DNA of 64,000 bases, taken from the NCBI GenBank assembly GCA_001179505.1, contig CDMY01000908.1:176672-240671 (forward strand), written 5' to 3'. This document shows positions 37,178 to 39,861 of the stretch, in pieces. A model generated the notes under the pieces. That model saw only the letters and a list, made by a program, of their open reading frames with translations, made no database searches and had not been told where the DNA came from. This stretch comes from Vitrella brassicaformis CCMP3155 (Eukaryota > Protista > Chromerida). Position numbers and translations under genes: made by a program. Within the stretch, counting starts at the first letter, position 1. The number at the start of each line of letters is the position of its first letter.

Positions 37178-39861
37178 ATGGCACCCCGACCCGACACTCT
37201 GCTGCACGACAGCGGCGCCCATGCGGCCGCCGGACACGCCAGTGCACTCTTAGAACAACAGTAAGCTGCCAGCCAAGGGTTATGGTGTGGGCCAAGGGTC
37301 ATGGGGTGTGTGTGTGGTGTGCAGGAGTGTGTGCGCGCCTCCGTGTGTGGTAGGGGTGAGCGTGAGCGCGGCGCTAGTACTCATCTGCGTGGTGCTGGCC
37401 CTCTCGTGCTGGCTGTCGAAAAAGTTCCTCATCAGCGTCATCAAGGCTAGGTGTGTCTGCTATAGAGATGCACACACAAAGGGGGGTCGGGTCGCTTGAT
37501 TGAGAGGACTGACGTTCATTCTCTGTGTGTGGTCGGTGTGTCTGTGTCTGTGTGGTGTGTCAGGAACGCGATGTTTCGCTGCTTCTACCAGCGTGTGTTG
37601 AAGCCGCACTTCTTCAGAATGGACCCCGAAAAGTGCCACGAACTCGCCATCAAATCGGTGTGCCGGCACACACACACACACACACACACACACAACACAC
37701 AACACACAGCAAGGCATACACACACATCTCCCTCCCTGCCTGCCTGCATCTGCGTGTCTGTGTTTGTCTGTCGGTAGGGCAAGGTGCTGGGCGCGACGTC
37801 GTTCACTCGCGGCACTGTGGGGGTGCAGTTCGGCGCGCCGCACCTCAAGGAGCTCGAGCAGACGATCCAAGGGGTGGTGTTCCCCAACTGCGTGGGCCTG
37901 GCTGCCGGCTTCGACAAGAACGCTGACCTCATCAAACTGATGCCGCACGTGGGCTTCGGCTTTGAAGAGGTTGGTTCGATCACTGGCCGTCCGTGTGAGG
38001 GCAACCCCAAGCCGCGTGTGTGGCGGCTGCCGCAGAGCGAATCGCTGCAGATATGGTATACAGGACACACATGGGGGGCTCACCACAGCATGCACACAGA
38101 CGATATGTAGGCACATGTGTTGTCATGATGTCTGTCAGGTTTGGCCTGTGCAACGACGGAGCGGAGAAAATCGCCCAGCGGTGAGCTGCAAGTCTTCACT
38201 GAGTGTGTTGGCTTCAACGCACGTGTCCATGTGTGTCTTTGTGTGTGTGGGTGCAGGTTGCGCGTCAACCACCCGCACCTGCTGCGATCCAACATGACCA
38301 AATCCATGGACAAGGGCGGCAAGAACGGTCGGTACACACCCCACACCCCCACCCTCCCTCCCCTCACGCACACACACATGCACACATTCGCGTGTTCATG
38401 TCTGCCTGTCTGTATACGTGTGGGTGTGTGCGTGTGTTGTGGTCCCTCCCTCATCCACCAGGCCGTCGTCAGGCCCCCCCGTTTGTGACGGGCATATCCA
38501 TCGCCAAGACCAACTGCCGCGAGACGGTGGAGGAGCACGTCGGCATACAGGACTATGTGCAGGTGACCAACCACATCCGTCCATCCATCCACTGTGGTTG
38601 GCATGTTGACATAGATCATATGTGTGTGTGTGTGTGTGTGTGCAGGCGTATCGTGAGTTGCTGGATGTGGGCCACTACTGGGCCATCAACGTGTCCTGCC
38701 CCAACGTGTATCAGGACAACGGCAGACAGCCATTCACAGAGCCGGAACCTCTGGACAAACTGCTCACCGCCCTCAGAGGTACGTCTGTCTGTCTGTCTGC
38801 CTGTGTGTGTGTCAGCAGCACACCATCGATACACACGTATGGGTGGTTGGATGATATGACTGTGTGCAGGTGTTCACGAGTTCGACCGGCCCACGTTTGT
38901 GAAGATCGGGCCCGACCTCAGCAGCCAGCAAGTCGACGGCATCATCGACGTACCCACACACGCACATATGCCAACACAAAGACGCATGTGTGCTCGCTTT
39001 GGTACAGGTGTGTCTGCGTCACGGCGTGACGGGCATGATCATCAGCAACCTCACCAAGAAGCGAGAGGGCAACACACACATACACGAGGTAAGTGGGTGG
39101 GTGAGGGAGACAAACCAAACAAACAACACAACACACACCGTCGGTCGTGCAGGAGGATCTGCTAGGCGGGAAGCTGCCGTACCTAGGAGGGCTGAGCGGC
39201 AAAGTTGTAGAGGTACGCCACGCGCCGCAGACGCCTTCACACAGAAGCCTTCACACAGAAGCATCCTCACACATACGCACCCTCTCGCTGTGTTTGTCGG
39301 CCCGCCACGACCGAACGATCTGCTGTTTCAGGATTTGACGAACCAGCTGATTCGCTACGTGTACGCCAAAAGCGGGGGCAAGCTGGTCATCGTCGGGGTG
39401 GGCGGCGTCTTCACAGCGGAGGATGCCTACCGGAAGATCCGCAACGGCGCGTCGCTGGTGCAGCTCATCACCGGCATGATCTACAGGGTGCGTGTGTGAG
39501 TGTGCACATCAGCATCACGGCACACCACATGCCCACACACATTTCTCTCTCCCTGTTTTGTTGGTTTGTGCAGGGGCCCCAGCTGATCAGCGACATAGTA
39601 GTTGGCCTGTCCGACCTGCTGGCCAAGGACGGATTCACACACATCTCACAGGCCGTCGGGGCTGACGTCAAACAGGTCCGCACACGCACACACACACACA
39701 CACGCCCCCCACACACATGTTGGCATCTCTGTATGTGGTGTATGCAGGCTGGCGAGGGTATCAAGGGTGACAGCCCGGCGCTGCAGGTGGCTCAGCGGCA
39801 GCGCATGGGATTGGTGGAGAAGGACACGCAGGAAACCGACTCCTTCATCGTCACCAGCTAG
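37178..39861 (+). CDS. DHODH: Dihydroorotate dehydrogenase (quinone-type, class 2 architecture) with N-terminal TM anchor
   Basis: [48 protein letters not shown]...[84 protein letters not shown]. Confidence 0.96.

Follow-up and report, generated by a model that had tools for sequence, protein, structure and literature searches.

Dihydroorotate dehydrogenase (DHODH) features in textbooks and, in apicomplexans, is a validated drug target; the identity of its catalytic base, Ser in class 2 and Cys in class 1, is used as a rule for classification. Canonical class-2 enzymes, such as human DHODH (1D3G), Escherichia coli PyrD (1F76), and Plasmodium falciparum DHODH (1TV5), have a fold that includes an N-terminal two-helix domain, while class-1A enzymes, such as Lactococcus lactis DHODA (1DOR) and the trypanosomatid fumarate-dependent DHODH, have neither the N-terminal helical domain nor a membrane anchor and carry the Cys base in an N-x-S-C-P-N-V loop. 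A few exceptions to the class-2 Ser rule have been reported (PMC8520639); specifically, the fungal class-II enzymes SjUra9 of Schizosaccharomyces japonicus, ArUra9 of Anaeromyces robustus, and DbUra9 of Dekkera bruxellensis have a Cys base and allow pyrimidines to be made without respiration (Bouwknegt et al. 2021, PMC8520639). Here, we describe a gene for a class-2-like protein with a Cys base in a 64,000-nucleotide stretch of the Vitrella brassicaformis CCMP3155 genome (contig CDMY01000908.1, positions 176,672 to 240,671 of the forward strand), from here on referred to as the window; coordinates of this Cys-type gene are those of the window.

The Vitrella Cys-type protein shares the class-2 fold, including the two-helix domain, with the canonical class-2 enzymes and, like the eukaryotic members, has a leader and a transmembrane (TM) anchor; it differs from them in having only 32-36% identity and a Cys base and in belonging to a separate clade. 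With class 1A, it has in common the catalytic loop with its Cys and a pocket strand with Gly-Leu rather than Gly-Phe; it differs from class 1A in the presence of the helical domain and the anchor, and class 1A retains a pocket Asn that the Vitrella clade has lost. As in the fungal Ura9 proteins, a class-2 scaffold is combined with a Cys base, but the fungal proteins are single-residue variants that arose within the fungal lineage and are otherwise ordinary orthologues (PMC8520639), whereas the Vitrella protein has a remodelled pocket and falls in a separate prokaryotic clade (in trees built without fungal sequences). We refer to this Cys-type, class-2-like clade of candidate phyla radiation (CPR) bacteria and DPANN archaea as group A. 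We favor, with a probability of roughly 0.6, the reading that the gene was transferred from group A and encodes a membrane-anchored, second DHODH of Vitrella.

Fold and catalytic residues of the Cys-type protein

Reading the region 37100-39950 in three frames revealed a string of short exons with GT-AG borders. The resulting gene model (Table 1), in which all 14 introns (58-134 nt) have GT-AG borders, translates without any difference into the public 546-residue protein CEM36892.1 (UniProt A0A0G4H017), which carries the automatic database name "Dihydroorotate dehydrogenase (quinone), mitochondrial." The start codon at 37178 proposed in the first-pass annotation turned out to be an internal Met codon in exon 2; the true start is at 36976 in an additional upstream exon, giving 15 rather than 14 exons.

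Spliced transcripts are represented by Logan contigs of 1.9-2.2 kb from three public runs belonging to two studies. These RNA contigs, which stop at the acceptor near 37112-37113 at the 5' edge of exon 2, have explicit joints at 9 of the 13 downstream introns and cover the flanking exons in register at the remaining four; none of the joints was found in a DNA run of V. brassicaformis. Two transcript-derived proteins in MMETSP match CEM36892.1, one being identical and the other (P0307) agreeing at 545 of 546 residues. The sole difference in P0307, Ser for Arg at residue 19, lies at the exon 1/2 junction (37031/37114), and because this codon is split by intron 1, it stems from either a difference between strains or alternative splicing. 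Based on the spliced RNA contigs, the exact match to the model, and the MMETSP proteins, we conclude that this is a real, intact, and expressed nuclear gene. The nearest relatives of the protein are bacterial, as would be expected if the sequence were a contaminant of the assembly or a dead relic. These possibilities have a negligible probability and are rejected by the splicing evidence: the 14 introns are removed in the RNA contigs, the protein is identical or nearly so in independent transcriptomes, the reading frame is unbroken with every invariant residue kept, the gene is located on a 240-kb eukaryotic contig, and its GC content at third codon positions (GC3) is host-like (see below).

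To assign the protein to a DHODH class, we scored it against family profiles and structures. The whole protein passed the curated cut-offs of the class-2 models NF003652 (316 bits; cut-off 267) and TIGR01036 (267 bits; cut-off 200), scored 327 bits with NF003651, which is under the cut-off of that model of 448, and was far below the cut-off of the class-1 model TIGR01037 (77 bits; cut-off 270). Even single exons fitted the class-2 (quinone) models far better than class-1 models. Among PDB chains, rat and human class-2 DHODH scored highest (181-186 bits), followed by bacterial class 2 (142-167 bits), the Plasmodium enzyme (102 bits), and class 1A (35-44 bits). Of the class-2 matches, the Plasmodium enzyme is the most remote, so inhibitor behavior is not transferable from it to the Vitrella protein. 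In an AlphaFold2 model with a mean predicted local distance difference test score (pLDDT) of 82.6 and mostly >90 in the core, residues 1-77 form a disordered leader, followed by a helix at 80-126 (anchor and first helix), a helix at 131-145, and a (beta/alpha)8 barrel; this model superimposes on human DHODH with a template modeling score of ~0.90 over ~400 columns, N-terminal helices included. The two-helix domain contains the His and Arg of the quinone tunnel (His135 and Arg224), which are invariant in an alignment of 80 sequences. Thus, of the features of class 1, the Vitrella protein has the Cys base, but the N-terminal domain and the low score with the class-1 hidden Markov model speak against membership. 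These comparisons, which agree with the class-2 scaffold and TM anchor described in the first-pass annotation, establish the 546-residue product as a predicted flavin mononucleotide (FMN) enzyme of the class-2 DHODH fold.

Next to this conserved scaffold, the active site is altered. We compared residues using a HMMER alignment to human and rat DHODH and the 80-sequence alignment, and the two agree. Kept in the Vitrella protein are His135, Lys188, Arg224, Lys361, and Asn390 (His56, Lys100, Arg136, Lys255, and Asn284 in human DHODH), the catalytic-loop residues Asn320, Ser322, Pro324, and Asn325, of which the two Asn are the equivalents of human Asn212 and Asn217, and the GGLSG and GVGG loops. 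The class-2 base (Ser215 in human and Ser175 in E. coli DHODH) is replaced by Cys323. The Cys codon in the loop NVSCPNV, reported in the first-pass annotation, is TGC at 38697-38699, and all motifs listed there lie in one consistent spliced frame. Of the four pocket Asn (human 145, 212, 217, and 284) and the neighboring Thr285, three Asn are retained, while Asn145 is replaced by Ile233 and Thr285 by Leu391. Further replacements relative to human DHODH are Ser284 for Asn181, Ile469 for Tyr356, Trp223 for Phe135, and AKTN for GKNK. The motif corresponding to INRMGFNN is also replaced, as had been noted; however, its earlier reading as IWYGLCNDG ran over an intron, and the true junction, TG/G TTT, gives SLQIWFGLCNDG (IWFGLCNDG).

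The same replacements characterize group A. In the 64 other group-A rows of the alignment, the residue at human position 215 is Cys in all 64, position 145 is Val in 63 and Ile in 1, Ser181 is present in 59, Leu285 in 62, Ile356 in 59, and Trp135 in 59, and the Thr and Asn of AKTN are both present in 64. The complete signature (Cys215, Val/Ile145, Ser181, Leu285, Ile356, Trp135, and AKTN) is thus found at 7 of 7 positions in the Vitrella protein and at each position in 59-64 of the 64 others, and none of these changes is present in canonical enzymes. The replacement of the pocket Asn and Thr by hydrophobic residues suggests that the substrate edge of the pocket is changed in group A. The Vitrella protein departs from the clade at Phe235 and Cys238, which are Tyr and Lys in the other members.

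Because fungal Ura9 and a diatom DHODH also carry Cys, the Cys base by itself is not new: it is a known, sporadic class-2 variant, and the distinctive part of the Vitrella protein is the whole group-A signature. The fungal enzymes set a precedent, at the level of function, for class-2 enzymes of the Cys type being uncoupled from aerobic respiration. The DHODH of the diatom Rhizosolenia setigera (P0415/P0134) is of the canonical mitochondrial type (INRYGFN, GKNK, SNTT, and IYT) and has Cys as base (NISCPNM), indicating that the Ser-to-Cys swap happens inside the canonical eukaryotic lineage too. A feature search of the ESM Atlas returned as its top match a cluster mostly of diatoms. The Rhizosolenia protein was considered as an orthologue of the Vitrella protein and rejected, since it is canonical except for the Ser-to-Cys change and has 35% identity to it. 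A second prokaryotic set that we observed, group B, combines the class-2 fold with a Cys base and AKT(N/H) and retains Asn145, Thr285, and Tyr356; its members include L028 (an Obscuribacterales metagenome-assembled genome [MAG]), L046 (Solirubrobacter deserti), P0082, which has a multi-pass membrane extension of ~290 residues, P0096, P0127, P0142, and others. Group B stands midway from canonical class 2 to group A.

Relationship to CPR/DPANN proteins and origin of the gene

The resemblance to CPR and DPANN enzymes, which the first-pass annotation had put forward, was borne out by database searches. A word search with exon 5 recovered fragments with YYGLKNxG and AKTN, such exon-sized searches seeing proteins of 51-161 residues only. 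In a search with the whole protein, the 119 best matches after self had lengths of ~354-417 residues, 46-52% identity, and E values of 1e-118 to 1e-109; those named included Peregrinibacteria, Gracilibacteria, Doudnabacteria, and Patescibacteria, and no other alveolate was among them. An exhaustive search of representative sequences returned, at E 1e-30, only the protein's own cluster, which consists of three Vitrella sequences. With one genome per prokaryotic species, the best full-coverage matches were in Paceibacterota, Berkelbacteria, Saccharibacteria, Minisyncoccia, Parcubacteria, and "Patescibacteria group" among CPR and in MAGs of Woesearchaeota and Nanoarchaeota among DPANN, and all of these have NISCPN, YYGLKNDG, and GISIAKTN. 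In ordinary bacteria, for example Arcobacter, Bartonella, Hymenobacter, and Brevibacillus, the corresponding motifs are SSPNT, INRMGFNN, and GKNK. The Patescibacteria/DPANN proteins, which NCBI names "quinone-dependent dihydroorotate dehydrogenase," have all signature residues in common with the Vitrella protein and 50-55% identity to it over the whole catalytic domain.

To determine how many proteins of this type Vitrella encodes, we scanned the whole assembly (72.7 Mb in 1064 contigs) in six frames with PF01180 and identified three loci, i.e., the Cys-type gene, a gene on contig C212, and a dihydropyrimidine-dehydrogenase-like gene on contig C296. The C212 gene (VNVSSPNTPGLR; L009, G000:C212:92000-100000, ~3330-5650) encodes a canonical class-2 DHODH with the motifs IVNRCGFN, GVNLGKNK, VINVSSPNTPGLR, SNTT, and QIYT, and groups with alphaproteobacteria. 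It contains a run of N between the FIKIA and PDLSHEDKK exons; because of this gap, the full sequence of the canonical gene is not in this assembly. A second, canonical DHODH, for which a check of the genome had been proposed, is therefore present and belongs to a clade separate from that of the Cys-type protein. The C296 gene (L010, G000:C296:119000-126000, minus strand), which is also broken by assembly gaps, encodes a DHO_dh-type barrel, CxxCxxC 4Fe-4S motifs, and a pyridine-nucleotide domain.

Phylogenetic analyses placed the two class-2-fold proteins of Vitrella in different clades. A 93-row tree from a quick search under LG+C20 PMSF gave the canonical clade a Shimodaira-Hasegawa-like approximate likelihood ratio test (SH-aLRT) support of 99 and placed the Cys-type protein among Patescibacteria. 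Within the canonical clade, the C212 enzyme grouped with Bartonella and Pelagibacteraceae with a support of 95, which is the position expected of a mitochondrial enzyme. With canonical enzymes as the root, a tree of 63 rows recovered group A as a clade of 48 rows with an SH-aLRT support of 99; this clade included the Vitrella protein, the nearest row to which was a sequence from Peregrinibacteria (support 82; 95 under LG+G4). Holding the Vitrella protein together with the Vitrella canonical enzyme lowered the log-likelihood by 72 (P value of the approximately unbiased test [p-AU] 0.041), and holding it together with the whole canonical clade lowered it by 66 (p-AU 0.029). The protein thus does not branch with mitochondrial DHODHs in trees in which these are represented by the identified Vitrella canonical copy alone. 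Together with the residue comparison, these data support that the Cys-type protein lies outside the mitochondrial/alphaproteobacterial class-2 lineage.

We considered whether the gene could instead be a vertically inherited, fast-evolving paralogue of the mitochondrial DHODH, with the resemblance to CPR proteins being convergent or a long-branch artefact. Such an origin would account for the eukaryote-style leader and TM anchor, and the topology tests reject it by a narrow margin (p-AU 0.03-0.04). It is, however, very improbable, because the protein has 53% identity to a CPR protein but 36% to the Vitrella canonical DHODH, scores 400+ bits with CPR proteins but 181-186 bits with the human and rat enzymes, and shares at least 10 derived residues with the CPR/DPANN clade; moreover, the canonical clade and group A each have a support of 99, the former excluding the Vitrella protein, and no other alveolate orthologue was found in the searched databases. 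Based on clade, identity, and the separate C212 copy, we regard it as highly probable that the protein is a group-A member whose gene was transferred horizontally into the Vitrella lineage, as suggested in the first-pass annotation.

Several features of the gene are not bacterial. The bacterial relatives have no counterpart of the leader (~75 residues), the TM anchor, the C-terminal tail, or two insertions, one of 27 residues on the surface (exon 7 region) and one of 3 residues within the catalytic loop; like the introns, these parts distinguish the Vitrella gene from those of group A. The anchor has a Kyte-Doolittle hydropathy of >2 across ~25 residues. GC3 is 0.79 in the coding sequence of the Cys-type gene and 0.74 in the Vitrella canonical gene versus 0.16-0.46 in CPR genes. 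The host-like GC3, the 14 introns, and the added parts argue for an old transfer and a thoroughly domesticated gene.

The EukProt transcriptomes contain two further eukaryote-labelled group-A proteins, i.e., P0063 from Vermistella antarctica (Amoebozoa), which has 638 residues with eukaryote-style low-complexity insertions, and P0328 from the anaerobic jakobid Stygiella incarcerata, which has 381 residues and no extension. Because of its bacterial length and the lack of an extension, the Stygiella sequence may be a bacterial contaminant. The sequences from Vitrella, Vermistella, and Stygiella sit apart in quick trees; however, constraining the three to monophyly was not rejected (p-AU 0.84) and even gave a better tree than the unconstrained quick search. 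Accordingly, both one origin and several transfers of group A into eukaryotes are compatible with the trees.

The features of the Cys-type gene are listed in Table 1. Elsewhere in the window, we noticed a protein-kinase-like exon (NLSKLSHPNII.CEGMMLNNGVTALFMPYIHGRSLDKMV…HRDIKPG) in two near-identical inverted copies ~4 kb apart, which looks like a recent inverted duplication.

Table 1. Features of the Cys-type gene and of the protein-kinase-like exon copies (positions in the window)
Feature	Position	Strand	Residues	Description
Whole coding region	36976..39861	+	1-546 + stop	15 exons, 14 GT-AG introns, 546 codons + stop; equals CEM36892.1/A0A0G4H017
Exon 1	36976..37031	+	1-19	Start codon; Arg-rich amphipathic N-terminus; helix at residues 8-16 in the model
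Exon 2	37114..37260	+	19-68	Low-complexity Pro-rich leader; internal Met 37178; pLDDT < 50
Exon 3	37325..37450	+	68-110	Predicted hydrophobic membrane anchor ~37344-37421 (residues ~75-100; hydropathy scan)
Exon 4	37564..37657	+	110-141	Class-2 N-terminal helices; His135 codon 37637-37639 (human His56)
Exon 5	37778..38055	+	142-234	GLAAGFDK with Lys188 (37916-37918); Arg224 (38024-38026); Ile233 (38051-38053) in place of the pocket Asn of other DHODHs (human Asn145)
Exon 6	38139..38180	+	234-248	Reads ...W/FGLCNDGAEKIAQR
Exon 7	38257..38327	+	248-272	Vitrella-specific surface insertion, not in CPR relatives; pLDDT 68-72
Exon 8	38462..38562	+	272-305	GISIAKTNC; Ser284 (38497-38499) for human Asn181
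Exon 9	38646..38778	+	306-350	Catalytic loop NVSCPNV-YQD-NGRQPF; Cys323 codon 38697-38699 (human Ser215); Vitrella-specific 3-residue insertion
Exon 10	38870..38949	+	350-376	VKIGPDL; Lys361 (38902-38904; human Lys255)
Exon 11	39008..39088	+	377-403	IISNLTK; Asn390 (39047-39049) kept; Leu391 (39050-39052) for human Thr285
Exon 12	39153..39212	+	404-423	GGLSGK, FMN-phosphate loop
Exon 13	39332..39487	+	424-475	VGVGGV; ASLVQLITG; Ile469 (39467-39469) for human Tyr356
Exon 14	39574..39675	+	476-509	C-terminal barrel helices
Exon 15	39748..39861	+	510-546 + stop	Vitrella-specific C-terminal tail, no counterpart in relatives; pLDDT < 60
Protein-kinase-like exon, copy 1	41693..42580	+
Protein-kinase-like exon, copy 2	46555..47124	-

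Association of group A with pyrimidine genes and VKOR

To obtain clues to the function of group A, we analyzed gene co-occurrence in 151 evenly sampled Patescibacteria genomes, of which 26 carry group A. These counts ignore shared ancestry and MAG incompleteness and are used as leads. The gene for orotidine 5'-monophosphate decarboxylase (pyrF) was present in 10 of the 26 group-A genomes and in 49 of the 125 others (odds ratio 0.97, p = 1). By comparison, class-1-type PyrD co-occurred with pyrF in 26 of 27 genomes (odds ratio 72, p 7e-12). Genes for VKOR (vitamin K epoxide reductase) were found in 15 of the 26 group-A genomes versus 31 of the 125 others (odds ratio 4.1, p 0.002), the association persisted when fusions were left out (odds ratio 2.8, p 0.04), and class-1 PyrD had no such link with VKOR. 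Moreover, an N-terminal VKOR membrane domain is fused to 5 of the 26 group-A genes (L094:379-1932; L095:440-1897, with the true start farther upstream; L096:316-1878; L097:392-1960; and L098:1001-2578 on the minus strand). Four of these five fusions have both the loop Cys pair and the CxxC, while the fifth, read from an internal Met, shows the CxxC only; among three metagenomic fusion proteins (P0137, P0156, and P0418), two keep the full Cys set. In genome G036, the VKOR and group-A genes are ~0.8 kb apart. The Vitrella protein, in contrast to these group-A proteins, has no VKOR fusion. As leads, these co-occurrence data tie group A more firmly to membrane-quinone chemistry than to the pyrimidine pathway.

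Single fusions of group A to other domains were also seen, namely, to an N-terminal membrane domain of the PAP2 lipid-phosphatase type in Gracilibacteria, a C-terminal His_Phos_1 domain in Saccharibacteria, and a C-terminal cytidylyltransferase-like domain; the records of these fusions are P0052, P0321, P0371, L022:2420-4120, and P0057. In Vitrella itself, we observed a strong VKOR gene at C330:19256-19633 and a weak VKOR match at C296:115.6-116.1 kb, ~5 kb from the dihydropyrimidine-dehydrogenase-like gene.

Gene content also provides evidence in the opposite direction. Three Patescibacteria genomes (G036, G063, and G077) have pyrB, pyrC, pyrE, and pyrF, mostly clustered, and no pyrD among them, and group A is their only DHO_dh homologue; the simplest reading is that group A is the DHODH of these organisms. 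Among 50 open reading frames flanking group A in 14 CPR/DPANN loci, no Pfam family occurred more than once and no pyr gene was found, leaving no operon clue.

Based on these observations, we weighed genuine DHODH chemistry against the possibility that group A is a neofunctionalised family of quinone-linked FMN oxidoreductases that act on another small acid or work mainly as quinol-driven reductases. For example, quinone could be reoxidised for VKOR-type disulfide formation by reducing orotate or a fumarate-like cytoplasmic acceptor, reminiscent of the Cys-type class-1A enzymes, which reduce fumarate in the same pocket. The pocket is indeed remodelled, with the Asn145 replacement in 64 of 64 and Leu285 in 62 of 64 other group-A rows, and the contrasting odds ratios of group A and class-1 PyrD with pyrF as well as the VKOR fusions with their largely retained Cys set and the VKOR co-occurrence fit with such a function. 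On the other hand, three of the four pocket Asn, both FMN lysines, and the whole catalytic loop are kept, no alternative substrate was identified, the three genomes with pyr sets have no other DHO_dh homologue, and the co-occurrence statistics are either raised or made less sharp by incomplete genomes and common descent. We therefore consider neofunctionalisation possible but the less probable explanation and lean toward genuine DHODH chemistry for the Vitrella enzyme, as predicted from the retained catalytic loop, lysines, and Asn residues. A link to quinone is favored by the invariant equivalents of His56 and Arg136 and by the recurrent VKOR fusions and co-occurrence.

We note that several points weigh against a second, membrane-anchored DHODH of group-A origin. 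Vitrella already possesses a canonical DHODH, by which the pathway is served. Group A lacks one of the four conserved pocket Asn and the neighboring Thr, both having become hydrophobic. pyrF is no more frequent in group-A genomes than in the others; in five group-A genomes with very large contigs, we found neither pyrF nor a dihydroorotase match above the curated cut-off, making group A an orphan there, and the 14 CPR/DPANN loci have no conserved pyr neighbors. No assay of any group-A enzyme was found in the literature. The localization of the protein is predicted from sequence only. Finally, the statements on trees rest on quick searches with SH-aLRT and AU tests, and the rejection of a canonical placement is marginal.

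Proposed function and implications

In the second DHODH of Vitrella that we propose, the Arg-rich leader with its amphipathic helix at residues 8-16 and the following TM helix would provide targeting and membrane anchoring. By analogy to eukaryotic class-2 DHODH, the most likely destination would be the mitochondrial inner membrane. Plastid targeting was considered and rejected, as there is no N-terminal signal peptide and the first hydrophobic stretch is at approximately residue 75. The barrel would hold FMN in a pocket that retains Lys188, Lys361, Asn320, Asn325, and Asn390, and dihydroorotate would be dehydrogenated to orotate, or the reverse reaction run. Cys323 on the mobile loop would act as acid/base at C5 of dihydroorotate or orotate, with the hydride moving between C6 and N5 of FMN. 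Electrons would be exchanged between FMN and a lipophilic quinone via the tunnel of the N-terminal helices (His135 and Arg224), which would be lined differently in the Vitrella protein (Trp223 and Ile469). Based on the Cys base and the remodelled substrate edge and acceptor tunnel, this second DHODH probably differs from the canonical copy in kinetics, acceptor preference, or oxygen dependence. Because Vitrella keeps the canonical enzyme, the Cys-type copy is probably used in different conditions or for the reverse reaction.

A more far-reaching and rather doubtful idea is that group A constitutes a new functional class of membrane-quinone-linked FMN oxidoreductases that are not pyrimidine enzymes and that Vitrella captured as a redox valve. 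In CPR/DPANN cells without a respiratory chain, electrons from exported thiols would then flow through VKOR, fused or in trans, to quinone, FMN, and finally an acceptor in the cytoplasm; the remodelled Cys-type pocket would bind orotate or an acid resembling fumarate as this acceptor. Such an enzyme would have been captured by Vitrella, by Vermistella (independently or jointly), and perhaps by Stygiella to serve at low oxygen as a redox valve or quinol sink of the mitochondrion.

In a literature search that covered few subscription papers, we found nothing on a second DHODH in Vitrella, on DHODH in CPR, Patescibacteria, or Parcubacteria, or on bacterial VKOR-DHODH fusions. The Vitrella gene itself is listed in public databases, where it bears a generic DHODH name; in the literature covered by our search, we found no description of its clade and the clade signature, its origin, its odd pocket, or the link to VKOR.

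Our data support that a close photosynthetic relative of the apicomplexans has two class-2-fold enzymes of different origin, one mitochondrial and one a domesticated enzyme of the CPR/DPANN type. The Cys-type gene would represent a clean case of an old transfer from a bacterium to an alga that was followed by the gain of introns and the acquisition of a targeting and anchor module. The locus also points to a large clade that is apparently uncharacterised; 26 of the 151 sampled Patescibacteria genomes carry it, and its members are named "quinone-dependent DHODH" in databases. Should the Vitrella protein be a real DHODH, it would provide this organism with an additional route, one that may not depend on oxygen or respiration; otherwise, the whole family would be mis-annotated, and a new quinone-linked activity would be there to be discovered.

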